Positions 11,801-61,860 of a stretch of 63,759 nucleotides of DNA are shown here, piece after piece. The position numbers and the translations under genes are program-made. Within the stretch, counting starts at the first letter, position 1, and the number at the start of each line of letters is the position of its first letter. Below the pieces are notes generated by a model, which saw only the letters and a program-made list of their open reading frames with translations, ran no database searches and was not told the origin of the DNA. The DNA comes from Laetmonice hystrix (lineage: Eukaryota). The stretch is taken from positions 33,914,001-33,977,759 of the forward strand of contig OZ249437.1 in assembly GCA_965235115.1 (NCBI GenBank), read 5' to 3'.

Positions 11801-13592
11801 TGTTAAACTGGACAGTAAACAAGCGACATTTTACCGGTATTCCTTTGGGTTCTGTTGAATTTAGACAAGTTTTTGCCGCTACGCTGGTCAAGAGACAATG
11901 TAGCGGCCTCAAAGACAGTGTAGTGGCCTAAATACACAGCGTAGCGGCCCACTACGCTGAAAAAGGCTGGCGAGAACGCTGGACCTGGACTAGACTATGT
12001 TTATTAGCTGTTCAATGCCTCATGAGAAAGGTTCATGTAACCACCAGCATCTCACCACATGGGGATGCGGGCATGTGGCGGGACCAGGCTCACAGACCCC
12101 TGCAACTGGTGATTCGCAATTTTGCTATCCATGAGTTAGTTATGTATCGCAAAACGTGAATATTGGATCGCAAACTGTGATGCGATACCTCTTATTTTGA
12201 GCCTTGAACACCCAATGCAACAATGACATGTTATCTTTAAGAATTTCATGACTGACCCTAAGACACCTACATATTCACAAAGCGAGTTGTCTTGAAATCA
12301 TCCATCACCAGTAGACACTAGGTAAGGTCTATGTTGGCAGAAAGTGCGGTCTTGTGATTTTGTAAGGCATGTTATCAATTAATTAAATAAATGAAAAATA
12401 GTAGATTGACATCATTCCCAGTGATGTTAATCTACTAAATTTGTATGTCTGGCACCTTTTATAGACGGCCAACTGTGAATGGTATTATGGGAAGCATGGG
12501 CAACAGCTGCCTGTTGAGCTCAATACCGTACCTGACTTGAGCCGAATGGGCACAGAGTCTGAGACATTATGCACTGTAGCAGCATATGTGTCATGGAGCT
12601 TGACATCTGCCTGTTTACTATCTACAATCTAGACTAACAGGAAATTATCCCTGAACAAAAACCAAAGGCAGGATCTTTCAACCTGTAGGCACATATATAT
12701 CAGCGCACTAAAATACATGTTGCCTACAAGCCTGGTTATTAATTCATCCAGTAGAACTATCCCAGGTCATACCCGTCCTTCACCAGAGTACCCCACGAAG
12801 ACATCTAGGCTCCTGTGTCATCTCATCTCCAGATTTTGCTAAAACATGCAATTCTGGGGTGCGTTTCTTATCATGTCGTTAGCTTGTCGTATCGGTAACG
12901 TCAATGCAATTTCTTTTTCAATGGGGATTTTAACCGTGACGGGATAACGATAGATGAGAAATGCACCCCTGGTGTACAGCTATGGCTGAAATCTTCCTAT
13001 TGCCAGATGTCCGGGGCATGGTTGGGCAAGTCCAGCAGACCAAAGTAGACAATAGCCCGATGGCTTGTGCCCTGATCCAACATAGCCTTAATAATGTCAA
13101 GTATAGATGGTATGTAGTGGAATTTTGTAGTCACTTGTCAGGACTGTGGCAAGTGATCAATTTGAAAAATCGGCCACCTATGGTGTTAGAATGGCTGTAA
13201 ATGTTATTGCTGAACTGAGCTGAAAGATAGCTCGGTGGCTACTAGTGGGTGGGCACTTTAGATCCAAGCTTTGCTTAGCATGTGGGCAATTAGTGAGGGG
13301 CATGCAACGCGTGTACACAAAAGTGATGTATACATGTTTCTGTGGAATTATGGAATAGTTGACAGGTGCATAAACATGGCACCTTTTATAGAAAACAGTT
13401 ACACTCACCTAGAGATGCAAGCATGTCATGGAGGTCTTCTTTGTCAATAAAACCATCACGATTTTGGTCGATCATGTTAAAAGCTTCCTTAAACTCCTGT
13501 ATTTGTGCTTGATCAAACATGGCAAAGACATTGGAGGTGGCACGTTGGGCCCTCTTCTTGGTGGCCTTCCCTTTAGTTTTACGGCTCGACAT
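5850..13592 (-). CDS. MYL12/sqh: Non-muscle/smooth-muscle myosin regulatory light chain, 172 aa, 4 coding exons
   Basis: join(13592-13409, 7548-7387, 6384-6317, 5954-5850) = 519 nt, all GT-AG, phases 1/1/0. Translation [67 protein letters not shown]...[23 protein letters not shown]...[48 protein letters not shown]. The T18/S19 phosphorylation motif and EF-hands are intact. Confidence 0.97.
11649..11981. mobile_element. hAT-like MITE in an MRLC intron
   Basis: TIR CAGGGTTCTCGCCAG ... CTGGCGAGAACGCTG, flanked by the direct repeat GACCT (5 bp). Confidence 0.7.
12854..12971. mobile_element. Third copy of the Harbinger-like MITE family (12857-12968)
   Basis: GGGTGCGTTTC ... GAAATGCACCC with CTG on both sides. 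The internal CATGTCGTTAGCTTGT is shared with the copy at 4257. Confidence 0.75.
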
Positions 13593-13784
13593 TTTGAATG
13601 CTGTAGATGGTCCCTGGAAAAGAAAAGAAATCTTTTGAAACATCAGCAGGTATGGGACAAGTACGAATGAATTATTATAATTGCAAAAAGATTTCTTTAA
13701 GGTAGTCAGGCCTGCAATTACAGAAAATTAAGATACAGTAGAGCGGTCAAAATTAAGGATTTTCCCACGGAAGCAAAAAATAGC

Positions 13785-29700: not shown

Positions 29701-32700
29701 GTCATTTTGTTTTGGCTTAGAACCCGGATCCATATGAATCAATTTTCTTGTCTCCAGTTTATGTATTGGTGCTGGGCTAACATGCATTCGCTAAGGCTTG
29801 GTGTAAGGCTGCCATGTTAAACTGGAACTCCACCATGTGCAACATGTAACAAGTAAGGTGTTTTGGGAAGTTCAGTAGAACAGACACTCCCCTCCTCGAG
29901 GAAAACAACATGAGTTGTTTAGTGAGCTGCAGCCTGCAGGACAGAACTCTTTACAGAAGTCTTTACTCAACCAACCCCATCACTGGCTTCTGCAACTCAA
30001 CGTCAACATAATTCTTATGTGTGCTTACTGCAAAGTCTTTGCCACGGAAGGTGTTGGGTTCTGTGCTTCCAGGAGATTCATTAGGGAAGAAGGCCAGAAC
30101 TTCCAGTTTAGACTGAGCGTGGGAGATGACAGACAAGATGCTGGTACTCCTTGAGTGTGGAGTTCGGGCATAGGGAACTGTTTCTCTGTGTTTCTCTTTT
30201 ACAGTGGTCCACATCGGGTAGATGGGCCAACGTACCTGTAAAAGAGGCCATTCCAAGTACTCCTGAAACCTCTGGGCAAAGAGCTCCTCTCCCCCAGGGC
30301 TTGAAGCATGTGGAGACTAGCCGTACATCACTTTTTAAGAAAGTAAGCTGTCAAATGGTGTCTGACAGGAGTCACAAAGCTTTTGGGCAGAAACCTGGGT
30401 TCTTTCAAAATATTGAAAGATTTTCAGCCACGGTCCTGGTTCCAAGGTTATGCAAAATGCATGACCGAGGTGGCTTTACTGGTTGCTATGTGAAGGTGGT
30501 CTGAGTGTTTTAGATGGTGGTAGGCAGCATTGGACATGGTTATATGTCTGGGATCTCCATCATTCATTACATGTTCTCTCAGCTGACGGGGACCAGAAAG
30601 GAATGCACAAACCGGATTCCCCACCATTCGAGAGGATTTCACTCAGAGAGGTGGGGTGTTGGTGAAAAACGCCCCGGTTACTATTGACTTACTGCAGGAA
30701 ATAACTAGCAAAAGGGAACAAGGCCAACAAGATCTACATCTCGAAGGATAGAAGTGCAAAAACATGAGGGATTAGTGTCTCAGTCCTGTCGGTGAATAGA
30801 AGAAATCGGTGAAGACCAAGAAGAACGTCCGTTCCGATGGTTGTGCACTTCACACTGCACACTTTTGTAGTGTTCTTTGTTGTACAGACTGCTCCCAAAC
30901 TAGAATGACACCTAATGATATTTTATTTGTGCCAAAGGTGGGCCCAAGATGTTTCGCCAAATTCTGCATCTTTTATGTGTGATTGACAGTCATATAACGG
31001 GCATGGATATATTTACACAATGAGTATCAATTTCCATAAGTCACTGATTTGATTGCTTAATACTGTTACTCTTGTCCCTCCTCCTAATTTCGATTTAACA
31101 CTTAATTGACATCTCAGGTTTTAGTTTAGAAAAAATTGTTGGATGTTTGATTTTACCATTTCTAAGCGTTGTTCAATTTAAGTGACTATTTATTATTGTG
31201 ATAATCCTGAATCTTTCATGTATGATTGAGGACTGGGAAAATATTATCAATGAATTTTATCTTTAGAAAATCTTTTTTTTTCAAAATTTTTTTCTTTTTT
31301 AAGAGATGTTTTTAAAAATATGGAGCAGGAGGTCGTGATGTTGTAGAGACCTGTTTGTAGGCGCGTTAAATTTATACCTGACACGTCAGGCCTGCTGACT
31401 GCAGGTTGGGGTGTGGACAACCGTGTGTTTAATTTACACCTGACACGTCAGGCCTGCTCTCACTGATAGGTTAGGGTGGACACCTGTGTGTTTAATTTAC
31501 ACCCGACACATCAGGCCTGTGCTCACTGATAGGTTAGGGTGGACACCTGTGTGTTTAATTTACACCCGACACATCAGGCCTGTGCTCACTGATAGGTTAG
31601 GGTGGACACCTGTGTGTTTAATTTACACCTGACACATCAGGCCTGCGCTCACTGATAGGTTAGGGTGGACACCTGTGTGTTTAATTTACACCCGACACAT
31701 CAGGCCTGTGCTCACTGATAGGTTAGGGTGGACACCTGTGTGTTTAATTTACACCTGACACGTCAGTCCTGCTCTCACTGCAGGTTAAGGTGGACACCCG
31801 TGTGTTTAATTTACACCTGACACGTCAGTCCTGCTCTCACTGCAGGTTAAGGTGGACACCCGTGTGTTTAATTTACACCTGACATGCCAGGCCTGCGCTC
31901 ACTCATAGGTTAGGGTGAGTTTGTTTAATTTACACCTTATCAGGCCTGCGCTCACTGACACCTCATTAGGCCTGCGCTCACTGATAGGTTAGGGTGAGTT
32001 TGTTTAATTCATACCTCGTCAGGCCTGTGCTCACTGATAGGGTGACTGTTTAATTTACACCTGACACGTCAGGCCTGCTCTCACTGCAGGTTAGGGTGGG
32101 TTTGTTTAATTTACACCTGACACGTCAGGCCTGCTCTCACTGCAGGTTAGGATGGGTTTGTTTAATTTACACCTGACACGTCAGTCCTGCTCTCACTGAT
32201 AGGTTAGGGTGACTGTTTAATTTACACCTGACACGTCAGGCCTGCTCTCACTGCAGGTTAGGGTGGGTTTGTTTAATTTGCACCTGACACGTCAGGCCTG
32301 CTCTCACTGCAGGTTAGGATGGGTTTGTTTAATTTACACCTGACATGTCAGTCCTGCTCTCACTGATAGGTTAGGGTGACTGTTTAATTTGCACCTGACA
32401 CGTCAGTCCTACTCTCACTGCAGGTTAGGGTGGGTTTGTTTAATTTACACCTGACACGTCAGGCCTGCTCTCACTGCAGGTTAGGGTGGGTTTGTTTAAT
32501 TTACACCTGACACGTCAGGCCTGCTCTCACTGCAGGTTAGGGTGGGTTTGTTTAATTTACACCTGACACGTCAGTCCTACTCTCACTGCAGGTTAGGGTG
32601 GGTTTGTTTAATTTACACCTGACACGTCAGGCCTGCTCTCACTGCAGGTTAGGGTGGGTTTGTTTAATTTACACCTGACACGTCAGGCCTGCTCTCACTG

Positions 32701-35700
32701 CAGGTTAGGGTGAGTTTGTTTAATTTACACCTGACACGTCAGTCCTGCTCTCACTGCAGGTCAGGGTGGGTTTGTTTAATTTACACCTGACATGTCAGTC
32801 CTGCTCTCACTGATAGGTTAGGGTGAGTTTGTTTAATTTACACCTGACACGTCCCGCCTGCTCTCACTGCAGGTTAAGCAGCGCTGTGCCGTACTGGAGG
32901 ACCAGCTTGTTGATCTCGTTGTCCTCGCCATGGAACGATCTGAGAATGATGACGCCAGTGCAGATGATGCAGGGATCAGCCAGTTGCTATGGCAACATCT
33001 GTCCAGTCAGGTCATCTTCTTCGTCCTGTTTCAGTTTGCCAGCTTCCCACACATGGTTCTTGCTCTGTTTGAAAAGGTACTGTGATTCCGACCATGTCTT
33101 TATGTTAAACTTATATTGCCTGCCTCCATTTTGCCACCATATCTGAATATTCCTGTCTTGAATAAGATTTGTTCAGCACTTGAGAGCAGTAAACGATGAT
33201 TATGAGAATACGTTTAACTCCAGTTTTGCGGTTTCTTGTTTAATTTTTGTAAATCGCTTTTAGATAAACTTGTAGTCATAGTGATGAAAATTAAAAATGG
33301 TTAAAAAATAAGGCTGTAATAAAGAAAATTTCGATTTCAGCTGAAGGGGAGGAACCTTAGGAAAGGGCGTGATCACTTGATGTGGGTCCTACTACAATTC
33401 ATTTCTGGCTCGATCCAGAAAAATCCGGTGAGATCCAGAAGAAATTCTGACTAGATTTTTAGGATGCATTTAGATCTAGAACTTTTGAGTTTGTAACCTT
33501 GCTATTTAGGATTCACCTTTTCCTCATTTTCCCCTAGGAATTGATTACGAGACTAAGTATAACTAAAAAAAAAAAATCTGTGGTGCAGACCAAAGGATGA
33601 TGTTTTTGTTCTGACTTGGGATGCACTTATTTGTGCTGCAGCTTGAGGACTTCCTGCCGGTATTGGGACTGTATGACCTGCTGTATCCTGAGAAGGACTT
33701 GATCGCCGTGCCAGACGTGAGCAAGGCATCCTCCACCCACAGTATGGCAGTGACCTGTATCTGGATCCACCTGAACAAGAAGGCACAGAGCGACAAGGTC
33801 CGCCTCCAGCGCCCCATTCCTAATGCTCTCAAGAATCACCTGGAGTAAGTATAGCAAATTACTACATGTAGAGTCAGACCTCATTTATCCCAACAGCTTG
33901 GTGCCCATTAAAATATATTCTGATTGTGAAACATCTGGATCACTGAATCATTTTAAATAGAAAATGGTAGAAGAGGTTACCTGAAAGTGTGTTCGGATTG
34001 TGAGGTATAGATATTAAAGAAGCACGGATTAACGAGGTTGAATTGTATAAATAAAGTCGAGCTAACATAATTAATAATAGTTTTTATGTTTGACTCATCT
34101 AAGGGTGATAGCCTTGAAATAAGTTCATGTCAGAGTTAAGTTGATTCATTTTGAGCAAAACTTCTGGATTTTTGGTTATTGTCTGATCATGGATATCTTT
34201 TACCCATCCTTGTTTATTAGCCACTTTGCCAGGATTTTTATACCAATGAAGTCATTTTCTAGGGATTGGCTGATTCTAATATTGGTAGCAATGATAATGC
34301 TATTAATACAAGAGGATCTCAATGTTTTTCAGTTACCTGCAGCAGTCATTGAAAACCAAGAACCTTCAGATGACTGACTACCGCATTGCATTGCTCTGCA
34401 ATGCCTGTAAGTATTGGTAGATACAATGTCGATTTCTTCTTGTTTCTTCCTGGTCAAGCCTGACTCTCTTTGTTACCAGGAACAGCATCGAGCCAAAAAA
34501 TGCCATCAATCTGTGGAGGCAAAAACATTTTATTTAAGAGAGTTTCCAGTTCCCATAATCCACTTTGAATGCACATCTTTTTCTTGGGTGATAAATGTGA
34601 CACGTTTAATTTATTTTCACTTTTACTGATCCTCGTTTCATAAACCTTCACTTGGTTCAATGTTATTACCCTTTGTGGCCATTTCAGACAGCACCAACAC
34701 AGATTACTTTGCACTGCCAATGGGAATCTTGGTGGAAAGTATTTATGGAACCACACAGCAAACCACCCTGTTGCCAGGCAACATCACCGCATCCAGCCCG
34801 ACCCAGCCACTTCCGATGAGCATGCTCGACTCCCTGACAGTACATGCCAAAATGAGGTAAGGAATGAAATCAACATTCAACACCCAGGGCTGTTATCAGT
34901 TTGATTGGTGGGGAGGATCAGAGTACCTGGTGATAGCCACAGACCTTGCAGCAAATGACTGCCAAACTGTAATATGAGGCATAAAATGCAATATACAGCA
35001 AAAGGAGAATGAAAAGAGGATAAACTAATATAGAACAAAATATGTGCAATTAGTTGAAAAGTGTTTCTAGCGTTTTCAATTTTGAGAAGAAAAACAGAAA
35101 GAAAGTCTGTAGTGAAAAGCATAGTACATGTAAATATATCGACATTCTCTGTGATATCTTTCCAGCAAGTTGTTTCTTTTTCATTTTTAAAATTTCAAAT
35201 GTTTTTCTCAACCAGTTTGATCCATAGCATCGTGACCCGTGTCATTCGCCTGGCACAAACCAAGTCTAACGTGGCGCTGGCGCCGGCCTTGGTGGAGACG
35301 TACAGTCGTCTACTTGTCTACATGGAGATCGAGTCTCTAGGCATCAAAGGATTTATCAGTAAGTCCAGCTCGCTTGGTTAAATATCAAAGTCGAGGAGAA
35401 AAATTTTACGAGCAAATCCTTCCTAAATCGGGACAGATTTTCCAGCCTTTTTTGATGTGCATTCACATGTCTGTGTACTGTAATATGTATGTGTAAAAGT
35501 GTACCTGTTTTATTTAAATGGAAAAGCAGCAGAAAGTAGAATCAGGTGTTACTGTTTTAGTATCAGCCCTCATTTATCAGGAGTGAGTAAGGTCAAACTG
35601 TGTTGTTGTTTCAGGTCAGCTCCTGCCCAGCGTTTTCAAGTCCAACGCGTGGGGCATCCTTCACACCCTGCTCGAGATGTTCTCATACCGTCTCCATCAC

Positions 35701-41700: not shown

Positions 41701-44700
41701 TTTCCCATTTTGTCAGCTGATGGAGTCAAGTAGAGTGACCGTGTGTGTTGTATAGTGAACTCTTGGTTGCTGTTTCAGCTGACAGTCGAGCTGTACGAGT
41801 GTTGAGTAGAGTGACCACATGTGTTGTATAGTGTGACAACTCTTGGTTGCTGTTTCAGCTGGCGGTCGAGCTGTCTGAATGTGTTGAGTAGAGTGACCAC
41901 ATGTGTTGTATAGTGTGACAACTCTTGGTTGCTGTTTCAGCTGGCGGTCGAGCTGTCTGAATGTGTTGAGTAGAGTGATGTGTTGTATAGTGTAAGAACT
42001 CCTGGTTGCTGTTTCAGCTGACGGTCGAGCTGTCTGAATGTGTTGAGTAGAGTGATGTGTTGTATAGTGTAAGAACTCTTGGTTGCTGTTTCAGCTGACG
42101 GTCGAGCTGTCTGAATGTGTTGAGTAGAGTGACCACATGTGTTGTATAGTGTGACAACTCTTGGTTGCTGTTTCAGCTGGCGGTCGAGCTGTCTGAATGT
42201 GTTGAGTAGTGTGACTGGGGGTGTTGTATACCGTAGTGTAAGAACTCTTGGTTGCTGTTTCAGCTGACAGTCGAGCTGTAAGAGTGTTGAGTAAAGTGAC
42301 CACATGTGTTGTATAGTGTGACAACTCTTGGTTGCTGTTTCAGCTGGCGGTCGAGCTGTCTGAATGTGTTGAGTAGTGTGACTGGGGGTGTTGTATACCG
42401 TAGTGTAAGAACCCTTGGTTGCTGTTTCAGCTGACAGTCGAGCTGTATGAGTGTTGAGCAGTGTGACCATGTGTGTTGTATAGTGTGACAACTCTTGGTT
42501 GCTGTTTCAGCTGACGGTCGAGCTGTCTGAATGTGTTGAGTAGAGTGATGTGTTGTATAGTGTAAGAACTCTTGGTTGCTGTTTCAGCTGACGGTCGAGC
42601 TGTCTGAATGTGTTGAGTAGAGTGATGTGTTGTATAGTGTAAGAACTCTTGGTTGCTGTTTCAGCTGACGGTCGAGCTGTCTGAATGTGTTGAGTAGAGT
42701 GATGTGTTGTATAGTGTAAGAACTCTTGGTTGCTGTTTCAGCTGACGGTCGAGCTGTCTGAATGTGTTGAGTAGAGTGATGTGTTGTATAGTGTAAGAAC
42801 TCTTGGTTGCTGTTTCAGCTGACGGTCGAGCTGTCTGAATGTGAGGGGTAGAGTGATGTGTTGTATAGTGTAAGAACTCTTGGTTGCTGTTTCAGCTGAC
42901 GGTCGAGCTGTCTGAATGTGTTGAGTAGAGTGACCGCGTGTGTTGTATAGTGTAAGAACTCTTGGTTGCTGTTTCAGCTGATGGTCGAGCTGTCTGAATG
43001 TGTTGAGTAGAGTGATGTGTTGTATAGTGTAAGAACTCTTGGTTGCTGTTTCAGCTGACGGTCGAGCTGTCTGAATGTGTTGAGTAGAGTGATGTGTTGT
43101 ATAGTGTAAGAACTCTTGGTTGCTGTTTCAGCTGACGGTTGAGCTGTCTGAATGTGTTGAGTAGAGTGACCACGTGTGTTGTATAGTGTAAGAACTCTTG
43201 GTTGCTGTTTCAGCTGACGGTCGAGCTGTCTGAATGTGTTGAGTAGAGTGATGTGTTGTATAGTGTAAGAACTCTTGGTTGCTGTTTCAGCTGACGGTCG
43301 AGCTGTCTGAATGTGTTGAGTAGATTGATGTGTTGTATAGTGTAAGAACTCTTGGTTACTGTTTCAGCTGACGGTCGAGCTGTCTGAATGTGTTGAGTAG
43401 ATTGATGTGTTGTATAGTGTAAGAACTCTTGGTTGCTGTTTCAGCTGACGGTCGAGCTGTATGAGATGTTGGAGGTGGTCGATAAGAAGGTGGATCACAT
43501 GAACCACATGGATCCCATAACAGACTTCCTGTATCCTTACACCATAACCACCGTACACAAAGTAGTTTACCAGGGGTACTCCCCCCCCCCCACCTGCTTT
43601 CAGGGATGAAAGTTTTCAGGAAATTTCCTGAAATCAGGAAATTTGAAAAAATCCCCCCCCCCCAAAGAAATAACACCCAAAAAAGGAAATAGGCCTAGAT
43701 CTATAGGCAAAAGAGGTAGGCCTAAGCCAAGGCTAAGTATTGCCCTGGACTGTGTGGTGGGCAATTAATATCAAATGAAACAATATCCCCTTCCAGGACG
43801 TTTTTTAACACCATGCAGCTCAATATATCTCTACCTGCCAAAGTTCGTTTATAGATGGGGATATTAGAGTGTCTCAAACCCGTCCAGTGTCACGGGTGCC
43901 ACCGTGCATAGGCCGGTCTGCCGGGGGTGCTGGTCCCTGTAGCTGTGGTCACATCGCTCACATAGACCGGCCCGCGTGGGCTGACTTCTACCGGCACGCG
44001 GTTGCGTCTGTCCCGTCTGGCAGGCACGGCCCCGTGTCGCTGTGGTGAGAGCGACTCACCTCAGGTAATGACTTCAGGCAAAATTGATGGTCAGGCAGCT
44101 GCGAAGCCCGTTGATTCAGGCTTGCCATTATGCCATATCCATGCGCGAGTTTTGCCTGAGCGCTCACTTAGTGATAGCAACGAGACTATACACAGACCGG
44201 TCTGTCTAGTCCCGGTGATAGTGATTAGGCTGACGAACTACGCACCATCACAATGTCACTCCTCACAGGAAACTGGGTCAATTTAGTTCTATGAATCTGC
44301 CTAGTATATATGTCAGTAAGTTCTCATAATGTGTTCTTGCATATAAATTTGAGGATAGTGGCATTACGTAAGTGGTTTTCACTGAAGTTTTGGGGTTGTC
44401 AGGACTTTTCATTACATTTGTCGCTCAGTGCAGGTGTCCTGATAAGACCGGCGGAAGTGACAATTTTCACAACAACATGAGTGGCACATGGACACACGGG
44501 CTGAACCACACTCGACTCAGCGAAGCCTGTGTTGCTTGGCTGAGAGCCGCTGAGGGTCGTGACTGCTGAGGGTCAAGACTGATGGACAGCCTGTGTGGTC
44601 AGTCTAACACATGGAAGCTGTTTGACAACGTAATCGGTTGCATTTTGGACGCTAAAAGCCGACTGGATTCCAATGTTGGAGAGAGACGGCAGAGCCAGGC

Positions 44701-47018: not shown

Positions 47019-47506
47019 TTAGGGATAACTTGCTCTTGCCCAACAAATTCCTTTGACTCGTGCTAACTCTACGTTTTTTTTATGGAAGGGGTGCCAGTCC
47101 AATTTGGCTACACTGGGGGTTAGGCCAATCGATGCAGCTGGTATTTTCCATGGTTTTAACAGAAAACATAACGAACGTAGTTCATATCAGAATGTCTTTA
47201 CTGGAGTTCGCAAGATCTCAGAGGAGTGTACACAATTTCATTGATTTATAAATTATACATTGAACAATTCATTTATTTGCACCTGTTGCACTTTAGCTCA
47301 TAGCACATCATCACTTGGCCAACGTTGGCCCACCATAGGTAATTCTGTCTGGGCAATGACTTTTTGTCCACTGGTAGGCCAACATTGGTTCACTGCTCAG
47401 CTCAGCCACCAGAATGATGTTGGCCAGATGACAGGAACTGACATTGACCCGACAGCCCGCCCACTAAAAATTCAACGGCCTAAAAACTTTGTGCTGTTCA
47501 GAGTTG

Positions 47507-50500
47507 TTATCTTTTTTGTTTTTTGCTTTTCTTTTTCTTACAGGGCTCACTCGGTACATTTTCTGTTCCTTCTTCAACTTCGACTTCATCTTCTTTGTCC
47601 AGTTTCCTTTTCTTTTTCTTCTCCTTTCCAGTTCCTCTCTCTATTTCACAGCAATCCTGATCAGTATGGTTGTTGTCATCCAAGACCTCTACCTCCTTTT
47701 CACTTCTCTTTTTCTTTTTTTTGCGTCGCTTTTTAGTCCGTTCGTCACTCTGTACACACTCTACATCTGCTGCACCATCGTTCTCTTTTGTACTTCTTGC
47801 ATGTTCATCACCACTGTCATCACTTCTACAAGGGTCTGAATCATTCTCACTAATTTTGGGAGTAGAACTGGCACTTTCCTCATCAACGCACTCCTTCTTA
47901 GACTTTTTCTTCTTCTTTTTCTTCTTTTTTTTACTTAGATCATCTGTTACCACTTCAATCACATCCTTTTTGTCATCACCATTTCGTGTGTTCTGCTTCT
48001 CTGAGGCTTTTTGACTGTCAATATCATCAGATACTTTGGAGCTGTATTTGGCCAAAAAGGACCGCTCTTGTTCTTGTATTCTTGCTAACTTTGCACTTGC
48101 TGTGATACCATGACGGGCACCCCTAGACAGAAAACATTGGTGATTTGATGTTACATTGAAGCTGTTGGCTTAACTGACATGAGAAAAGTTATGAATTGAA
48201 AGACAACATAACTTTCATTACACCTTCAGGCAAAGAGTTCAAGGTTATTTTGGTGCATTAACACAATCATGTTAGCATGTAAGATTCCAAGAACATTTAA
48301 TATTAGCTATAAATTTTAAGTTACAGAAGGGAAGTAACCAAACTTACTTGTGTGCTGTTCTTCCTTCACAGATTTTGAATAGCTCTTCATCTGTACATTG
48401 CCTTTTTTAAAAGAAAATAAATAATGAGTTATAGGCTTTCCCCCCAGCACAAATGTTTTGAATGATTTGCATATAACATACAGAAATACTTTATTCAACC
48501 ATTATTTGGAAATTAACCAGTACCTGTGTTATGTGCGATTTCTTTTCAAATGCACAGACAGCAGGTGTACCCCAGTTACTTTCAGAATGTCCGGAGAAGA
48601 GAAATGTTGTATAGTACTTAACTGAAATTGAACCCAAGCCCTAAGATTTCTGCACCCATTCACATAGCATAAGGTCTCAACACCCATGCCCACTCGGCCA
48701 TTGCCACTTCCATTAGTGTGTATGTGTGTGTGTGATAGAACTGTTGTAACCTATATTTTATCACAAGCCACTGAATCACTCTCTACCTGAGATTTTCATT
48801 TTTCTCTTCATCCTCCTCTGAGTCACTTTCACTGCTAGCTTCAGCCGTCATCTTCCCATCATTCAGTGTAGCCGCCTGAAAGTGGAACAAGTAGCTGAGT
48901 CACTAACAATCATAATCTTAAAACCTTGAGGCTTTCCATGAAATATCAAACTCCTTCTTCAGCAGGTCTCGTGTTTCTGATAAAATACTGCTGCCTGGGT
49001 GAAAATGAACAAATCTTGTATTGGATAACATCTGATGAAGATGAGTGGATCAATCATTACCCTTCACCAGCTACTTTAACCCACACAGTATATTGTTATC
49101 ATATATCAGTAACCTGAGTTTGTTGTTGTTATAAATGCCACTTTGTGCCGTCAGTTTACCTTTATAAACCGTCCATACAGCATCTCTTTGTTAGCCAAAG
49201 CTTTGCTCAGGGGTTTCTTTGTGCTCACAGCCAAATCCTCTTCAGTCTCCACCTGGACTCCCTCCTAAAAAATGACAAAACTCTGTCCATCATTACAAGA
49301 AAAGCGTGAAAATGAACCATATGTAGACAGGATATGGATGCTTAGGAATCTCAGCTTTAAAAGGGACCAGATAAATGTTTAAACAAAATTAATGACTGTG
49401 TTGGGGGTGGGGAGGGGGGAGGGAAGTACTGCTATCTGCACAAGTTTGGCAGAAACTGACTTACCTGGGAATTGTTAACTTTGATGTTGTTGGCAGCTTT
49501 GTTAAAGACATTTTCCCACCAGTGGTAAGTAAACTCATCACCAGGATTGTGGCCTACCTGAAAGGTTAAGAGTACAAAAATGTGAACTGGCACAAATTAT
49601 TTACCAAAAAAAGCAGCATATTTATTACCATTAAACAGTTGAAGATAGACAGGCTACAAAATTTATATTACATAGCATGGATACATTTTGTCTGTATTTT
49701 AAACTCCATAACTAATACTTTCTATCACAGTACATTTCAAGAGCAAGAATACTGGCTATAGTCATGATAAAACTTACCCCAGCTGTGTCAAACTTGAGTT
49801 TCACCTTGATGGCATCTGTCATGCCATGTTCAGCTCGCCCGAGTCCTTTTCCTGTTAGGGACATCAAAACAACGAGTTACAGTCAGAACGTCCACGAGTC
49901 AGAACGTCCACGGTGCCACTGAGTCAGAACGTCCATGCAACATGGTCAGAACGTCCATACCACTTTGCAACTCACACATATCGACATTTCCTTTCTGCCA
50001 ATGTCATTGAATGAGCCTTTTTGGGGGCCCTGGCCTAGATGATAGTCGTAACTATTACCGTAATAGATCTATAGTAGCTAAGCAGTGGGTCTTTTTTACG
50101 AAACGGAGCCTTGCTAACGATTTAAACCGAACGAAACCGAGTTCCTATTGAAGTTAACACATCTCTGAGTAGGGTACTGGCGTAGCCTAATGTGTTTCGG
50201 GTAGCCGCAGGCCTCGACCAACTGTTATGTTCAGTAAAGCTAAAGATGATCAAACTCAACAACTCCCCCAAAACCAACTAACTTATTCACCCTCATGTGC
50301 CTCTCTATCATTAAAGTTTACCCCATTACCGACTGATGGGGCTGACATGGCCGCTAGCTGTCTGGGGTGCTGAAGGGAAGGGAGAGAACTTACCGCTCGG
50401 TTTCGTGAAAAAGACCTAGATCTACCACCTTTTGACTGCTACAAAGTACAAGTCTAGATCATGGACTATACCCTATAATATATATGGGCCCCATAATATA

Positions 50501-51335
50501 ATTCCTAAACTTCTTTTGAAACCACGTGCTTGGACTGTGGTTGTGAGCCAAAAGCATGTACGTTGTGACCCGAAAGCGTGTACGTTGTGACCATTTTTGG
50601 ACGTTGTGGCTCATGGACGTTGTGACTCGTGGACGTTCTGACCGGGACCCAAAACAACTCATTAAAATATTCATTTATGACATTATGACAAGTGATAGTA
50701 GTGTTACTGGCCTGACATGTACTACTAGCCAACTATAGGGATACACTTTACTGCAGTACAAGTGGTGGATCCAGGCCAGGGGGGTGCAGGGGGTGCACAC
50801 CCGCCTCCGGATTTTCGATGACAGTTTTTCTCTGTTCTCGCATGCCAGGTTTTTGTTTGTTTGAAGAATTGACCAAAAATATCATAGCCTAGGAAAAGAA
50901 TTGACAAAAAATTATATGGTAGGCTAGGCCTAAAATTTAGGCTAAATGCTCATCGGCAGACGGCCCATCGGCAGATGCTAGGAAACAGCGGGTTTTTTTT
51001 GGTCTTCTAAAATTTCTGGGGGGGGGGGGGGGGTGGGGGTGGGGGGGTGTCATAACGCCTTTCTGACTTCTTTTTATACATGTACTTGTAATTCTTGCGA
51101 GTCCAGTACCATAGGTCTTGATTGCAACTGTAAGTGTAACAACGTTCTCTATTATCGCCCGGTACTACGGGGCACTGCCCCCAGTATCTTTCGACAGACA
51201 TTAGAGAAGGCAAGGCTGAATGTGTACATATTGTGTATTTATGTGTTTATTATTTTACACATAAAACTAAAGCACTGATCTGATTTTACCTTCACTCCAG
51301 CCATGTTTCTCGAGCTGAGATCTTGCGAAGTCCAT
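47507..51335 (-). CDS. GPATCH4: G-patch domain-containing protein 4, 358 aa, 7 coding exons
   Basis: join(51335-51290,49851-49778,49557-49465,49264-49160,48875-48787,48401-48348,48122-47507) = 1077 nt. Reads [65 protein letters not shown] ... MLYGRFIKAATL ... [35 protein letters not shown], then a Lys-rich tail. Confidence 0.93.
49874..50650. mobile_element. 777-bp TIR element with subterminal repeats in GPATCH4 intron 1
   Basis: GTCAGAACGTCCACGAGTCA and its exact reverse complement TGACTCGTGGACGTTCTGAC lie near the ends, with repeated GAACGTCC / GGACGTT motifs. AAAACAAC (8 bp, or CAAAACAAC 9 bp) flanks both sides. Confidence 0.75.
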
Positions 51336-51752
51336 GGCCCATGTGGCGTCGGGCTCAAAAGGGCATGCAACCCACCTGGTGGACAATAAAAGAAGCACCA
51401 GAATTGTGCCACCAGGCGGCGTTAAACTTACGTATAGCCGGATCGCGCCCCCGATCCCCGTCAGATACTACCCTCAGAGGGAGCATGCAGTGTCCTGGCC
51501 CCTCAGGGATTTGGTGGCAGACAATAAAGTATAGGCCTATTTAGACTCTAGTAAAGAATTATCGAGGGATTTATGAGCACAATTTGCGGTTAAATATGGC
51601 AAGGGGAACCTTTTTTCCCCTTTTTTTCGCTATATGACCATTAATCAAACTATTTTCCTTCCATTTCGACTATATTGTTTTACATATGGAACAAACTATT
51701 TTTTATGTAGTTTGATGAACAAACTGTCCCCCCCGTGTTTGGTGAACAGATA

Positions 51753-51784
<32 letters not shown>

Positions 51785-52129
51785 CCATAGCCCCCCCCCC
51801 CCCCAACGTATCAAATGGTCCGCCCCTAATGATACCCCCGATACTCCCTGGCTATCGGCCTGACAATGGACACCAGGTTGTAGGCCTACATTGCGTCTCA
51901 TGGATAGATAAGGAACAAATTTATAATTGAATAAATATAGCCTAGGCCTAAATTAACATTCATTAGCCTCTCTCTCAAAAAAAATCTAAGCATCCGTGGT
52001 CTTCATTCTAGAGTTAGAACTTCCAGAACTTCTACTGAAAATCACCAGAGACAGAGTGTAGTAAATTATTACACTCTCTGAAACCAGCAACAGGTCGTTT
52101 TGAGCCTGCCCCTGGAAATAGAACAATAA

Positions 52130-52480
52130 GCATACGGATTATGACGTTTTCAGACGTCACAAAAGCTATTATATAGGTCATGACTGGGACGTCATAATCT
52201 ATCTTATGACGTCACAGACTTGCTTTTATTACTGTATCAATAACTGGGACGTCATAATCTTTCTTATGATGTCACAGACGCGGCCTTTACATTGAACAAC
52301 TGGCTACAATATCGCGGTGAAAAACGGTTCTAACTATGAATTGTAGACGCAAATCGAATAATTTATATTGAGTACATGAATATTTTAACATAAAGAAATC
52401 ATCGAATAACGTTTGAGAAATTGATTCTTCAAAAACTGTAACACCCATAATCCCAAGAATTTGTTGATGTGACGTCATAA
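52130..52480. promoter_or_regulatory. Cluster of CRE/ATF-like GACGTCA motifs between the divergent GPATCH4 and orphan genes
   Basis: Full TGACGTCA at 52207-14 and 52470-77. ACTGGGACGTCATAATCT is repeated at 52183 and 52243. Confidence 0.35.
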
Positions 52481-52615
52481 TCCCAATAGGTTGTCATGGA
52501 CAGTGTGAAGACTGTTCACAACACAGATCTGCAGTGCGGTTGCACAAGCATTGGCTGCGTCTTTCGTTGATGAATATCAATTGTTCCCTCCATTGACGTA
52601 CAAATTCTGCTCAGC

Positions 52616-54644
52616 ATGGTTCAGCAGACAATGGACGGTTCCATGAAGTATCACAAGATGACCCGCCTTGGCCGAGTGGTTGGATCCTTCGGGAGATCTT
52701 ACCGGGCATGTTGGTTGGGCATCGATCAGTTTGATGATGACTTTTACGGCACTCCAACAAAATCCCCAATGCCAATGGTATGCTCCGTCGGAATTTTTCT
52801 GACCCTTGCACGCCCGGGGACAAAGATTTTACTGATGTCCAAACGTTAATAAATAAATACAGAATACTGACATACTCACCAGGTCAAACTCAGTATTTTT
52901 TTTTTACCTTTGTGTGTAATTGAGTATAAACTTAATTAGAGGTAGACGGTAGAGAACCTTTTTTTCACACAACTTACAGGCCTAGGCTATAACGTTATAA
53001 TGACAATTTGTTATTCAGGGTGGCAGTGACTCCCCAAAGTTCACTGACATCAACCTAATCAGTTACATACAAGACAGACTTCCCTGGGAAAAAGTTTCTC
53101 AGCAGGAGGCGGCCTTCGAACCCAAAACTAAAGGTAGGCCTTTGCAACCATCTTGACAAAGTTATAGCCCCATAAAATTAATGATGGATGCATGGCCTAT
53201 AAGATCTAGCCTCTCTTTGTCTAAATTTTGTCTGCCTGCCTGCCTCTCACTCTCTGTCTGTCTTGCTCTGTCTGTCTGTCTCTCTGTGGCTCTGTTTTTT
53301 TTCACATCGCAGTAGGCCTATGTATAATATTTGGGTATATTCCCCGTGATAACTTATGCCCCACGAAATTTGTTCGAAAGTATAGATCCATGCATGGTCC
53401 TGACCTAATTATCCCTAACCCCGGTCCCTACACCTCCCAAAAACATATCCTATCCCTGACCTTAACCCGAACCCCCACCCAAAATTTTGTGGGGAAGTTA
53501 CCATGGGGGAATAACCAATATATTTGTCATTGACTGTCTACATCAGAGATTCTTAGATTGGGGTAAAAAAATCAACACAATTCTGAGATTTAAAGAGACG
53601 CGTCACTTTTCTCAGTGGCGCCACCTCGTGGCAATTGACGAACTCTATTTTTACACGTTGCAACGCGTTTTTTACGTCACTCATGCTGTCAACAACACGG
53701 CAATGCAGAGGCAGAGTCAAGTCTGGCCGCTTCGCATCCCAGAAACAGTTTGACAAAAGGCTTCACGATGCCAGAAAAATGTACTTGACTATGTGTTTTA
53801 ACATTGGAGTCTATGGGACCGATAAGACCCTTGGTAGTGAAAATGTCGATATCTCATGAATTTCCATGGTGACATATGATTTTTTTAATCTAAAGTGTTC
53901 AAAACAAGTCATGCAACAATTCTGAGAAGTATTTTCAGAATCTCTGGGTTAGAAATGTCTGAAAAGAAACTTCTCTCTTCTAATTCGAACCAAAAATTTC
54001 ACGTATCTCTCTCTACTGTAGACTGTATACATAGTAGTGCGAATTGAAGGCCTATCTTCAAATGCTCATAACTCAGGATCCGATATGGTGACCCGCCATT
54101 TTCTTTGCACCAAAATACTCGAAAAATGTAGAATTATTTTATGTGAAAGTAGCCTGAAAATCTCTGGGTCAGAAATTTTTGGCTTATTGGTGTCGAGTCC
54201 CTTTAATATCGACTATTTACAGATCGGCTGCGTGGTAAAGCAAGGTCTGCTTGGCGCCAAATTAAGAAATGGTTCAGCCGAGCCAAACCAAGCGGGGCGA
54301 TTATCTACCTGCCCGAAACCAGTGGCTCCATCTGGTACGTCAACACGCCAGACACAACTCCTGTCAGAGAAAACGAGGGTGACGTTTTCACTGATTTACC
54401 AGGAGACGGCAGCGTGAAGCTGGACGTTCTGTCGAGCCGTGACGTAGGCCTAGTCAAGAATATTGACGTAGTGTCGGAAAACTCGTCAGTGTACAGTGTT
54501 GGTGGTCAGTTTGACGAGAAGAACGGTGTTAGGTCCTCCATCATGGACCATACAGCTCTGGAGGTGGCGCGCCGTGACAATAAGCTTCCCATCAATGTGA
54601 ACCACTCACCTGTCAAGGTTCTTGTTAATAACTGGATGGAGTGA
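52616..54644 (+). CDS. Uncharacterised 232-aa protein, 3 coding exons
   Basis: join(52616-52777,53019-53133,54223-54644) = 699 nt. Splice sites ATG|gtatgc, tattcag|GGT, AAAG|gtaggc and tttacag|AT, phases 0 and 1, and the frame stays open throughout. AATAAA near 54764. No domain recognised. Confidence 0.7.
53340..53511. mobile_element. Tc1/mariner-type MITE (TA TSD)
   Basis: Imperfect TIRs TTCCCCGTGATAACTT ... AAGTTACCATGGGGGAA with TA on both flanks and a CCCTAACC-like core. Confidence 0.55.
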
Positions 54645-55560
54645 TCATGAGGTGTGGACCTAGGCCTACCAAATGTGATAAAAATAAGAAGAGATGAGTG
54701 TCGATTTATAGGCCTCCCATTCTTGCACGGCGACACCAATGATGGTCTATGAAATAGTTAAGCAATAAATGCGCTGAATTTAATGGACATTATGTGTTAT
54801 CTATGCTAAGCAATCTTTCAAGACCAAGCCTCCCCCTTGCCCCCCCAAATCAAAGCCATTCTGTATGGGTCGGTGTCACACAAATTAGGCCCCTATGTAT
54901 CCCGATCATAGTTTGGCATCTGATTAACAGTTTGAAGTAGATCTATATCAAAATTGTCCTAAACCGTTTTAAGAGCCTATAGCGTAAAACATAATAGGAC
55001 GTGCCCAACTCATTCCACAGGTTCCCCATGAAAGTTTGATAGACTTCCTAATGGCTTCTCTCAATGCAGGCACATGTTAACTTCTAGTAGTACTTCACGG
55101 TCGGATTTAATCAATAGTCTCCTACTGCAACGGTCCTACACGTTTGCGAACACATAGGCCTAGGCCTAATGAGCGTGTACTTTTTCAACGGCCAGCAAAT
55201 TCTCATTGGCACTCACTATAGGAGAGATAACATGAACGTAGATGGATTTATACATTTGTTTAGACCTATACGTCAGAGATTCCTGGGAGATTTTATGGGA
55301 AGTTTAACGTGTCACAAGGCAAGCTGGGGTTCGCCGTAGTTGATCACTATACTATAGCAAGTAATTCGTACAAAGGTCAGTTTACCTGCCTGTACACCAC
55401 CTAACTACGGACCTCGAGCCTTTAGAGGCCACATCTGACTGCTACACCCCAGCCCCTCGCCAAAAGGGCAGTAGTCAGCTATGTGACAATATTCATAGCC
55501 TCTATGGCGACAGTAACCACCTGTATTATGAATGGAAGAGAAGACATCCTGAGATCCTTG

Positions 55561-58500
55561 ATGAAGACTCGGACGTACAGAGGGACGGTGAGGATCATAT
55601 TACTGATCCTCTTTGTTCTGAACATCGCCGCCATGCCGCTAGATTTGTTACCGTTTGTTATCGATGTGGACTTTCAACTCAACAGAACTGCCATTGCCGG
55701 CATAACAACGCTTCCTTCAGGTAATGAGGTTGGCCTCCTTTCATTTTACCGGTTCACATAGGTAACCGTAAGGGTGTAGTATAGCGGTTCTCCGGGGTTT
55801 TATTATAGCCTATACATAATACAAAATGTATGAAAATTGGGGTATAGGTATACGCAGGGGAGGCAAAATAGCCATTCGCTTATGTGTAGAGGTCTCAATA
55901 ATAATCATAGGCTAGGCCCCTATATGGGGCAATATTCGCCCACTAATAGCATGCATGCAGGGGCATGCACCCTGGCTCGATGGAACTATAGAGGCACCTG
56001 TAGATCTAGATCTAAATTATTTTATGTCTGCTTCATAAATTTTCAAGATTTCTGGTTTGAAGTCACGATGAGCAAACAGGTCAACACCTTAAATAAATCA
56101 AATATTTACAATCTCCTCTTCACACTACGATGCCGTAGAGGGTTTCCCCAGTCAGCCAGGTGACTCCATTCTGATCGATGTCCCATGTTTATCCCCCCCA
56201 GGGACCCCCTGCAGAGATGACATGGGTAACATCCGTGAGGACGGTGATAGTTGGATATCCTCGGAGGGCTGTGATCGCATCTACTGCCAACACGGTTGGA
56301 AGGACAACTACACCGTCACCTACCAGTAAGACGTAGATCTAGGCCCTACCGCCCGTCCGCCTGTACTATACCACCCCCTTTTGTTGGGAAAAGGTCAAAA
56401 AATCAATATTTTTCCTAACCCGTGAGTTATCCCTATTCCCACCTCCATTTCATGGGAGGGGGGAATTAATCAGTAAGAAAGTGTACCGACTGCCCTGTAT
56501 AAAAGTTGAAGTAACTGACAGAGAAAACCACACATTTAACTACTGCTTTTGTTCCGCCAGGTGTCGGGAGGTGCTCCCGAATGAGAACCTTGATACCATA
56601 AACTGCCGCGAGGTGTCGCATCCGTCACGACCGTTCCCCCATTGCTGTCCCTACATCGACTGTGCATACAGAAATGTGACACCGACTGATCCGCCAAATG
56701 GTAAGTAGGAACTCGAGCTAGGATTTTGAAAGAAGAGGGCAGGGACTCATTAAAAAAAGACATATTAAAAACATTTCAACGAAAAAGGGGCCTTCAAAGT
56801 GTGGGTCCACATTTTAAAAATGATTTTCAAAAAGCGGGGCCGTGGGGGCGGGGGGGGGGGGGGTTAACAGTGGACGGATCCAAGTGTTAGATAGGACATG
56901 TCCTAACTAACATTGTAACACTACAGATGGTAAAAAAATCTTTGGCACCCAGGGGGGTTACAGACACCCAACCCCCCAACCCATAGGCACGGCCCTGCAA
57001 CCTCTCCTGGTGATACAACACATTCATTAAGCCTCGTGCAAAGACATAGGCAAAGAATTGGGAGTCATCAACATGAGAGCCTATCCCGACCCTCATACAG
57101 GTATAGGACCTGAAATAACTCTGGCAGTCATCAACACGAGAGCCTATCCCGACCCTAATACAGGTATAGGACGAGAGATAACTCTAGCAGTCATCAACAC
57201 GAGAGCCTATCCCGACCCTAATACAGGTATAGGACTCGAGATAACTCTGGCAGTCATCAACACGACAGCCTATCCCGACCCTAATACAGGTATATGACTC
57301 GAGATAACTCTAGCAGTCATCAACACGAGAGCCTATCCCGACCCTAATACAGGTATAGGACCTGAGATAACTCTGGCAGTCATCAACACGAGAGCCTATT
57401 CCGACCCTAATACAGGTATAGGACCTGAGATAACTCTGGCAGTCATCAACACGACAGCCTATCCCGACCCTCATACAGGTATAGGACTCGAGATAACTCT
57501 GGCAGTCATCCACACGAGAGCCTATCCCGACCCTAATACAGGTATAGGACCTGAGATAACTCTGGCAGTCATCAACACGAGAGCCTATCCCGACCCTAAT
57601 ACAGGACCTGAGATAACTCTAGCAGTCATCAACACGAGAGCCTATCCCGACCCTAATACAGGTATAGGACTCGAGATAACTCTTACTATTATCTTTCAGT
57701 TTGTCGGGATTTGTCTCCGGAATCCTCTTGCAAGATCTGGGCAGATGACCTGAACGGGTGTCACCCCACCAGTCATGTTTACAACTTTACGCGAACTTAC
57801 TGTAACGCCACCTGCGGGTAAGCAAAACGGTTTTTATACGCTTAAGAAACAGTAGGGACCTGCACACGCACAGTTAAATCCTTTCAAATCTCCAAACAGG
57901 TATGCCCCTTCTCTTGAAACTTTATTTGGTAGGGTTTCTGGATTACTAAAAGAATAGATTGCCAGCGAGTTGTGGACTGTCTGTTAGTGTAGATCAACAG
58001 AAGTTAACACTGTCGGGCGACAACGTGTAGGCCTAAAGTGGGCGTTCTACGACCCCCTCATCGCTTGCAGCTTATAGCGACTGACGACGTGCTTCTCAAA
58101 TGACGAGCAGGCGTCGTCCTAAAGTCTCAGCAGTCTCTCTCGAACCCCCACCGTTGCCACCCCCTTCCCATCATGCCCCTTCCCCTTTACACCGCCCCCT
58201 CACGTGACTCAGTATTTTGGACGTCCAACTACATGTGCCCGGACTTCTTTTTCCTTTTTTTAATTTTTTCTATGTGATTTGCCACACACTTACGTAGGCC
58301 TATAGGCCTATTCCCTGACGGCCAAAGTCCGGCCTCCGCACGTGGGGGACACGTTACCAAATTGTCGGCTGCTGTCCTTGCTGATTGGTGACAACATTTT
58401 CACCGCATGAGTAACCTGATAACCTTTAATCAGGAGCATACGTCCGTAAAATACGGCACACATAGGTTGTTGGCATAACTATTTAAGTACCGACATGTGA

Positions 58501-60613
58501 TTTCTGTTTGCATGCTGGATCATGCCGAACGGCTGCCTTTGTCAGTCTTACTTTAGTTGAAGGAAAAGAAAAGGAAATGTGGAGGAAAAAGGGGAAAGTT
58601 GTCGAGAAAAATATGCAGTGCCAAAATATGCAGTGACGTAAGTTTGAGAAGATTATGTCAACAAACCTAGCATGACGGAATAGACGGTAGCTATGATGAT
58701 TTTGGAAACTTCTAATGAACTTTATTTTTTTTTAGTAAAATAGCCTTTATATATGCTACCAATGTGACAATTACGAGAGTTCTAAAAGCAAACGGGAAGA
58801 TATGATATAAGGAAAGTCGGATACCACGGTCCATGGAGTTCAGAACTCCAAGAACCGTAAAATTAAAAATGCAAGACATACATGTATATGTTGCAAAACG
58901 TGCTGAATGTCCCAAAACAAATGACAGTCGGCACTTCATGAATCACATCTGCTTAAAGGCGCAATAAATAAAATACAATCATCATTTAAAACGACGCTTT
59001 CAGAATTCTTAATATATTTTCAACCTCTCTGCATATATCGTGGATGTAAAATATTTTGCAGATATGTGATATCACAAATGGCCAGTTACTAGTAATTAAA
59101 GATGGTGACCACTTTCCCGGGTCCTTTTACTTTCAAGTGACACTCCAGTAAGTAACGAGCGAACTTGGGTCACCAGTTGAATTTTGTACATGTGCAACAG
59201 GTCGGTTCATACGGTCCGCACGTGTTGGGAGTCAAAGGGTCATAATTAACACCACTGTGATATCGACATCAAGATGTTACTTTTCCTTTTGTAATAGTCT
59301 CCACCGAAGACCCCTCTATGGAGACAGTTTACATTGATTTAATTAAAAGTACCAACCCTCTCTGAAGTTTCTAAAATGCATTATATACCCCCTAGGGTAG
59401 TTAGAAGATTGTCTCGGTATAGACGGCGCACGAGTTTCTCTTCGCTTACCGCAACTCGATCTTTGCCGACGCAACATAAAGGGTGACGTTCCGTCACCTT
59501 AGATGGAAAGGTCCTTTGGTCCTTGGCTTCTCAGCGGGTCCCGTTTTAGGGGGGTTGTGGGGGAGGGGCGTTGGTGGCTGTCGTGCTCGACCCCGCCCCA
59601 AGCGTGGCGACCCCCCGCCTCCGGGCTGGTCACGTCAAATCTGACCGGTCGACTCGACCAGTAGTTGATGAATGGTTCTAAGGTCTCACCCACTCTCCGA
59701 GTCTGGACCACGTCACGCTGAACTCGGACGCCTCGGGCAGCCATTGCTCCATGACCAGTGGCCGGCTTGAAACGAACCCGGCTCTTTTCTCCATTAATTC
59801 TTGTCACCCGGTCTTCCTTTTATGAAGCTCTTTTATATGTGAATTTCTTTTTCATTATATTTTTTTTCCATGTTTAGTATTTAATAAAACAGTCACGCGC
59901 CTATCATTTTTGCTTGGGCTATAAAAATCAAAAGGTCTCTCAGGCCCCAAGACCTGACATTTCATCATAATACCCCTTCAATACATCTTCACGGTAATAA
60001 CATCCCGAAAGATGCAAACATTTTGTCCACCTCAATAATCTTAAGGTCTGTCTTCAACACGTATGAGCACCCCCTCTCCCCAAAACAATCGTTAAAAAGG
60101 AGAAGACAATAAAGGAATGAAGAATAAAGGTAGCTAACCTTTGACAAGACACTGTGTATGCAGATTTAGAGTAAACTTTGGTAAAGATAACAAATAGATA
60201 CGGTATCAGATATCACCACTATAAGATCGATCTTTTAGTTCTGACAAATGACGACATAATTATAATGCATTCTATTATACCAAATAGCTATTTTATGGTA
60301 TGGATAAAAATACGGGTCGTATACTACTGCTAAATACAGAGGCTCCTATCTGATCGTCAATATCGCCTCAGCTAGAATAAATGTTACAAACAAAAACTTA
60401 ATTAATTAATAATCAATCAGAGATATAATTTTTTCTAAAATTATCATTATCTAAAAAAAGTTTCCATTTTATGCTTTGATCGACTCCGAAACAAGTCAAG
60501 GATACTCACCTATAACGACGTCAGTCTTAAGCTGGATAGGGAATAAAGCGATCGATGGACAACTAATATTAGTTCATGGATTTATTTTTCTTATTTTTTC
60601 CAGATTTTGCTGA
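55561..60613 (+). CDS. Secreted protein with a single von Willebrand factor C (SVWC) domain and a C-terminal ShKT domain, about 183 aa
   Basis: join(55561-55720,56202-56325,56561-56700,57700-57817,60604-60613) = 552 nt, phases 1/2/1/2. Hydrophobic signal IILLILFVLNIAA. Eight-Cys module CRDDMGNIREDGDSWISSEGCDRIYC...CREV...CREVSHPSRPFPHCCPYIDC. Six-Cys module CRDLSPESSCKIWADDLNGCHPTSHVYNFTRTYCNATCGFC*. The start could instead be an upstream in-frame ATG (55528). Confidence 0.85.
57063..57683 (+). repeat. Minisatellite, 10 units of 63 bp, abutting the acceptor of the ShKT exon
   Basis: Unit GAGATAACTCTGGCAG|TCATCAACACGAGAGCCTATCCCGACCCTAATACAG|GTATAGGACCT. The last unit ends 16 nt before the exon start at 57700. 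Confidence 0.93.
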
Positions 60614-61860
60614 TAGAAAGAAATGCATGGCACATCAAGTCGCAAAGTCTTCGTAACGTCTGCAGGAATTACTGAGCAATGACGAGGCTGTACTAAGGCG
60701 CCCAAGGCACAGGACTGCTTTAGCCAAACTTACCACAATGATTGAATGATACTTCACAGCCAGCCTGCGGGGACTGAAATGGGCGATAAAGTTGTAAGCG
60801 CCCAGATTATTATAATGATCCGAGTAAATGCTGGCAGTTCCCAGTTTCCAAAAAGTTCTCCCCATGTATCTATTCTTACTCTGTCCTCGTGGGGACACAT
60901 GTTAAAAATAATCGTCTGTAATCGTGCAAGACCACTTTGCTGTTCGATATAAGAAGCGACGAATGGGGCAAGGACAGAAGTGGTAATCATCGGTGTATGG
61001 CGCAGATGAGTTCGAGGTGTTTCGGAGCCTTTTCTCATCAACTGAACCACCTCCGACTTTGGAATGTCCAACCGGGAACGAGTTTTTCATTAGTTTTTGT
61101 TTTGGGGTAGATCAGTAGGGAAACAAGATAGCAGGAACTCATGTTGCTAAGAAACTTTGGGTCTCTAGGCTTACAGTTCCATGTGGGCCGCCACATTTGA
61201 CGGCATGACGTTAGAGGAATTTAACGATAAAAATATATCATGAAGACAGTACATTTTCTTTTTTTCACAGCTCCTATCGTTGGTCCAATTTTCCCGTCAC
61301 ATTTTGATGACCTCCTCACGCCCTCATATCCATAATGTAGTTTATATTTAGATATATAGTATAAAGTTTATCCATAGGTTATAAGTTTATGTTCTGCAAA
61401 GACTATATAGCCTTGTGGCGTTGTTGGCGGTTAAAATCCGGATAGAGTTGTCAGTTTGCACCTGTACAAATGCCGCGTATTGCATCTAGTTGAATGAGAA
61501 AGGTGTACAGCTGGCCAAAGCTGCCACAGAATAGGGCCCTTATATAATAGCAGGTAGCGCAGTCCTATATGGTTTCTGGGCATATGTAAGTGTTTTAAAT
61601 ACATTTTCAAATGTCAAAGTAGAGTTACTCCCGATATAAGCCTATAAACATTACCAAGGGGCTGATTCCGAAACCTTTTAATTGGATTGCTGAACCATTT
61701 GACAAAGAAAATCTGTTCTTCCTCCCAGTCTCTCTCCATATTAATAGGAGTTTATGAAGGCAATGATGTAGTGTAAATTATGAATAAAGCTAAATCGATC
61801 CGTCGTATATGTTTCAAATGTTTTTTAAAATAAGGGACGCGTATGTTTTGGCGACAGTTC

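Follow-up and report, generated by a model that had tools for sequence, protein, structure and literature searches.

A five-exon gene of Laetmonice hystrix predicted to encode a secreted protein that joins an SVWC and a ShKT module

The window analyzed here is a 63,759-nucleotide stretch of DNA from Laetmonice hystrix (GenBank assembly GCA_965235115.1, contig OZ249437.1, positions 33,914,001 to 33,977,759 of the forward strand); positions given below count from its first nucleotide. Between positions 55561 and 60613, the window carries a predicted gene for a small secreted protein in which an SVWC module is followed by a ShKT module. Five open segments of the + strand, all bordered by canonical GT..AG sites, could be joined into a reading frame of 552 bases, and this frame is intact across the joined predicted exons, with no stop codon or frameshift. 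The predicted product has 183 amino acids, 14 of them cysteines, and five N-glycosylation sequons, among them N89, N133, N170, and N177, and its mature part of ∼160 amino acids is acidic. A preliminary description had portrayed the locus as encoding a secreted fusion of SVWC and ShKT, which is a fair account of what the gene is predicted to encode; its gene model and both of its domain assignments hold up.

The start codon, a signal-like N terminus, and an acidic spacer of 32 residues that includes one N-x-T sequon are encoded by exon 1 (55561 to 55720), which ends in phase 1 and gave no Pfam match. The N-terminal half of the SVWC module, with cysteines 1 to 3, is encoded by exon 2 (56202 to 56325), which ends in phase 2. 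Exon 3 (56561 to 56700) supplies the C-terminal half, with cysteines 4 to 8 and the x-P-x-C-C motif, together with a short linker containing Pro and Thr, and ends in phase 1. Cysteines 1 to 5 of the ShKT domain are located in exon 4 (57700 to 57817), which ends in phase 2, and the frame closes in a 10-base terminal mini-exon, exon 5 (60604 to 60613), that completes a Gly codon and adds Phe, Cys, and the stop codon (60611 to 60613). All five exons lie on the + strand, and the intron phases are 1, 2, 1, and 2. The SVWC exon pair is 1-1 symmetric, and the ShKT domain is entered in phase 1. The modules had been described as bounded by phase-1 introns, and this was borne out at the module borders, although each module is also split internally by a phase-2 intron.

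The splice sites used by the model are strong. All four donors read GTAAG or GTAAT, sequences found at 3.6% of the GT sites in the window, and by pyrimidine content the four acceptors rank in the top 1.7%, 4.3%, 4.3%, and 0.3% of the AG sites in the window. Exon 5, only 10 bases long and 2.8 kb downstream of exon 4, was tested separately. An in-phase Gly-x-Cys is produced by 10 of the 321 AG sites after exon 4. By pyrimidine tract, the site used, at 60604, ranks first of the 321 (in a tie), and the cysteine encoded there is immediately followed by a stop codon. Use of this site yields the canonical C-x3-C-x2-C end of a ShKT domain, supplying the last cysteine that would otherwise be missing. 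A ShK-like pattern of five cysteines occurs once in the six frames of the 63.8-kb window, and tblastn identified no second copy or paralogue of the gene model there. The exons are somewhat richer in G+C than the introns (0.47 to 0.55 versus 0.42 to 0.47).

The joined exons 2 and 3 matched the Pfam SVWC profile (PF15430) over its entire length (positions 1 to 66 of 66) with 33.4 bits, against a cutoff of 27 (E value, 5.5e−8). Taken alone, exon 3 scored 19.4 bits, under the cutoff, and exon 2 gave only a weak match to TILa (E value, 0.035). The eight cysteines that had been attributed to this module are residues 57, 77, 82, 96, 110, 123, 124, and 129, spaced 19/4/13/13/12/0/4, with x-P-x preceding the CC pair. 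A regular-expression match across residues 57 to 129 confirmed that this arrangement is an exact fit to the published SVWC pattern, C-(18,23)-C-(4)-C-(10,16)-C-(6,23)-C-(8,13)-x-P-x-C-C-(1,5)-C (PMC11515477). The eight cysteines presumably form four disulfides. SVWC is not the sole domain of this small secreted protein, as a ShKT domain follows it in the predicted chain.

For the second module, joining exons 4 and 5 gave 22.9 bits against the Pfam ShK profile (PF01549; cutoff, 20.9; E value, 1.3e−4) over profile positions 2 to 37 of 37, and exon 4 alone reached 13.7 bits, under the cutoff. Both modules therefore pass their profile thresholds when the exons are joined, which was the check proposed with the original domain calls. 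The gains of 14 bits for SVWC and 9 bits for ShK upon exon joining are also evidence for the splice model. The six cysteines predicted for the ShKT module were found at residues 143, 152, 162, 176, 180, and 183 (C1 to C6), the last directly preceding the stop codon, with a spacing of 8/9/13/3/2. ShKT domains have the bond connectivity C1-C6, C2-C4, and C3-C5 (PMC6409789), and by analogy the module here presumably contains three disulfides with the same connectivity.

The N terminus of the product is basic, with four Lys or Arg among the first 11 residues, and is followed by a hydrophobic core of 13 residues (12 to 24) that forms the highest hydropathy window of the protein. On these features the product is predicted to enter the secretory pathway. 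The signal peptide, also named in the preliminary description, was called by inspection, and in-frame ATGs further upstream, at 55504 and 55528, are alternative candidate starts. A linker between SVWC and ShKT, also expected and there described as Pro/Thr, is present and comprises only 13 residues, of which three are Pro and two are Thr. It lacks a dibasic cleavage site, and thus both modules probably remain in a single chain.

Relatives were sought in several collections. An exhaustive phmmer search of 1.84 billion representative proteins with exon 3 (46 amino acids) returned no matches at an E value of ≤0.001; a query of this length needs ∼41 bits or more, so this null result rules out only near-identical kin. 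In word-indexed searches, no candidate sharing three 5-residue words was found for exon 3 within its 121-amino-acid stop-free stretch (candidates of 67 to 212 amino acids), for the joined SVWC domain (44 to 140 amino acids), or for the joined ShKT domain (25 to 79 amino acids). The domain searches covered proteins of up to 212 amino acids, and longer fusions lie outside this range. The product is thus absent from these collections, any kin being too divergent for word seeding, and the lack of shared words with database proteins of 44 to 212 amino acids marks it as a very divergent SVWC member. A metagenome scan produced pattern matches, none of which was confirmed by tblastn. Sequence searches of the PDB with both joined domains returned alphavirus E1 (E values of at least 0.34) and calsequestrin (E values of at least 0.72), which were rejected as chance-level noise. 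A literature search, with domain-architecture databases outside its scope, identified no paper pairing SVWC with ShKT, and we know of no SVWC-ShKT protein.

The reading favored here is that the locus, in an animal genome, is an intact protein-coding gene with five exons, the product of which is a secreted humoral binding factor with SVWC and ShKT modules; we assign this reading a probability of roughly 0.6. Judging from the sequence, the gene and its two-domain architecture are very probably a real prediction. The functional part, a secreted humoral binding factor in which ShKT is accessory, is argued from related families and is put forward tentatively, at somewhat less than even odds. SVWC proteins are secreted cytokine-like or pattern-recognition immune factors of arthropods, with a few molluscan members, among them the SVWC opsonin granularin (PMC13115929, PMC11515477), and the earlier statement that they are mainly protostome agrees with this literature. 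The ShKT domain is promiscuous: it forms free channel-blocking peptides in anemones and is far more common as a C-terminal addition to secreted astacins (M12) and CAP proteins, and in MMP23 (PMC6409789).

By these analogies, the product would be a glycosylated humoral binding protein of a defense or stress type. The SVWC module would make the main contact with a ligand or receptor, as in the cytokine-like and pattern-recognition SVWC proteins of arthropods, and ShKT would be an accessory binding module at the C terminus, comparable to that of astacin-ShKT and CAP-ShKT proteins, rather than a free pore-blocking peptide. A humoral binding protein is preferred over a free blocker because the ShKT module has an isoelectric point (pI) of 6.0, two sequons, and no Lys between C3 and C4, and because no dibasic site is available. 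The gene most likely originated by exon shuffling, in which a previously stand-alone SVWC gene would have gained ShKT exons, in phase 1, after its own. A bolder version would see a lineage-restricted factor that physically links a Vago-like cytokine or recognition module to one that modulates ion channels. A single secreted protein could then recognize a target or receptor and also change channel activity, either on immune cells of the host or on an invader; the architecture would be absent elsewhere and would perhaps belong to a phylum without described SVWC proteins. We give this version only a slim chance.

Several points weigh against the humoral binding factor. The functional interpretation, including the defense role offered in the preliminary description, is drawn wholly by family analogy with the arthropod SVWC/Vago proteins and molluscan granularin (PMC13115929, PMC11515477). 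An NF-kB consensus scan of the window identified four sites, which is below expectation, and none was near the gene. No relative was found in the protein and metagenome searches and no paralogue in the window, and the ShK score exceeds its cutoff by only 2 bits. Channel modulation is possible without the Lys-Tyr pair of ShK toxins, as MMP23 has Arg/Leu at that position and acts on Kv1 channels (PMC6409789). Finally, starting translation at 55504 or 55528 would extend the region before the hydrophobic core to 22 to 30 residues, which is more similar to a signal anchor.

Among the alternatives, the one that survives best is that the two modules are made mostly apart, although we regard it as unlikely. 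The main product would then be a stand-alone SVWC protein of 143 amino acids, arising when intron 3 is retained or the transcript is polyadenylated inside it, and ShKT would appear in a minor isoform or through skipping of the SVWC exons. Translation that continues past the donor of exon 3 would end after two codons, which makes the 143-amino-acid isoform possible, and ATTAAA motifs occur at 56749 and 56764, 49 and 64 bases past the donor, although this motif is frequent in AT-rich introns. Stand-alone organization is moreover the rule among SVWC proteins (PMC11515477, PMC13115929). Since the SVWC exon pair is 1-1 symmetric, its skipping would join exon 1 to exon 4 in frame and give a signal-ShKT product. 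However, intron 3 has a strong donor (GTAAGT), the acceptor of exon 4 is likewise strong, and exon 4, beginning in phase 1 and lacking both a start codon and a signal, requires either exon 1 or exon 3 upstream.

The product might instead be a toxin or venom component, with ShKT blocking or modulating the potassium channels of an animal preyed upon, a predator, or a parasite and SVWC acting as a carrier or pro-part. This is rather improbable. ShK-type toxins are basic and are freed by a processing protease; the ShKT module here is near neutral to slightly acidic, with a single Lys, immediately after C2, and two Arg, and neither the linker nor the stretch preceding the module has a dibasic site that would release it as a short basic peptide. 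In ShK, the Lys22-Tyr23 pair lies in the loop between C3 and C4 (PMC6409789). Here this loop (C162 to C176) contains one Arg, two Tyr, and the sequon N170-F-T and no Lys, so the pair that marks voltage-gated potassium (Kv) channel-blocking ShK toxins is lacking, as judged by loop position and not by residue-level alignment to a solved ShK; the PDB sequence search with the joined ShKT domain provided no solved ShK for such an alignment. A second sequon, N177, also falls within the module. The gene is single copy in the window, whereas tandem duplication is common for toxin genes. The suggestion of a toxin effector in the preliminary description is weakened by the loop, sequons, charge, and linker. 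Speaking for a toxin are the predicted secretion and the ShKT fold, on which sea-anemone Kv blockers and secreted venom proteins of other phyla are built, and ShKT domains without the canonical pair may still affect channels (PMC6409789).

It is also improbable that the protein is a type II membrane-anchored form, in which translation from 55504 or 55528 would leave the hydrophobic stretch uncleaved and display SVWC-ShKT on the cell surface. Both upstream ATGs share the frame of the start at 55561, no stop interrupts this frame back to 55426, and 55528 is the only one of the candidate ATGs with a purine at −3. However, the hydrophobic core of 13 residues is short for a membrane span and is followed by Pro and Asp, as is typical of a cleaved signal, and small residues (Ala-Ala) follow the core. 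A cleaved signal is still favored because the core is short and Pro and Asp come after it. A nonworking gene, whether put together by chance from exon-like pieces, recently dead, or not expressed, is highly improbable: no relative was found in very large protein collections and the single-exon Pfam matches would not be significant window-wide, but two distinct cysteine-rich domains are rebuilt to full profile length across introns with the right phases, by four strong donors and four strong acceptors, in a frame free of stops and frameshifts and with an exact match to the published SVWC spacing.

Other features of the locus and window were also recorded. The first AATAAA 3′ of the stop codon, at 61783 to 61788 on the + strand, matches the consensus for a poly(A) signal and is a candidate for that role; its use would imply a 3′ untranslated region of ∼1.2 kb. 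Most of intron 3 is occupied by a minisatellite (57059 to 57683; 63 bp, 10 copies) that is noncoding in the model and ends 16 bases upstream of exon 4. Minisatellites are frequent in the window. One at 41757 to 43469 (77 bp, ∼22 copies, or alternatively 236 bp, 7 copies) lies in the 2-kb block where the GC skew of the window is strongest (+0.285) and generates long spurious open frames on the − strand, and another at 31968 to 32876 comprises 16 copies of 56 bp (alternatively 5.5 copies of 167 bp). Long stop-free frames are present on both strands at 47245 to 48169 (up to 220 amino acids on the − strand and 163 on the + strand); they had no Pfam match, and an exact-product look-up returned no record of them.

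The palindromic octamer TAGGCCTA occurs 16 times in the window against an expectation of 0.71, and none of 100 shuffles reached 16. Twelve of the 16 sites fall within 50925 to 58310 (for example, 55155, 55161, 58028, 58295, and 58303) and are clustered around and inside the SVWC-ShKT gene. Their flanks are unrelated, and thus the sites are not copies of one repeat; the excess could reflect an oligonucleotide bias or a binding site. Scans of the window for transfer RNAs and Rfam families were empty. When 27 other long stop-free stretches of the window were compared with Pfam, they gave a single match, an EF-hand exon at 13404 to 13592 on the − strand, within a stop-free stretch at 13389 to 13727. 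This is the first coding exon of a myosin regulatory light chain of the nonmuscle/smooth-muscle type, ∼85 to 90% identical over 63 residues to the N termini of vertebrate MYL9/MYL12B in the PDB (E value, 9.7e−33), and the match identifies the window as part of an animal genome.

Neither module is new, and exon shuffling is an established route by which ShKT has joined other secreted modules. If expressed as modeled, the gene would provide an SVWC protein that is not "single-domain," another partner for a C-terminal ShKT gained through phase-1 exon shuffling, and a small but clean illustration of the way in which invertebrates diversify their repertoires of humoral factors. Its weight would be greater if the source animal lies outside the arthropods and molluscs, the groups in which SVWC proteins are cataloged, or if expression were tied to a defined defense response. 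No long-standing question is opened by this locus, and nothing here demonstrates a toxin.

Compared with known systems, the predicted protein shares with the ShK-type toxins of sea anemones the six cysteines, the C-x3-C-x2-C end, and membership in the ShK profile. Those toxins are free peptides of ∼35 residues that carry a Lys22-Tyr23 pair between C3 and C4 (PMC6409789), whereas the module here is part of a larger chain, is near neutral to acidic, contains two sequons, has no Lys between C3 and C4, and is longer in the C2-C3 and C3-C4 loops (9 and 13 residues). Like arthropod SVWC/Vago proteins and molluscan granularin, the product is small and predicted to be secreted, and its 8-cysteine domain has the published spacing and passes the Pfam cutoff over its full length. 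Unlike them, it continues into a ShKT module and has no RGD/KGD integrin motif. With the astacin (M12)-ShKT and CAP-ShKT proteins and MMP23, it has in common a predicted secreted chain in which a C-terminal ShKT stands behind another extracellular module, and, as in many of them, the canonical Lys-Tyr pair is lacking (PMC6409789). It differs from these proteins in the partner, which is an SVWC module here and a protease or CAP domain there.

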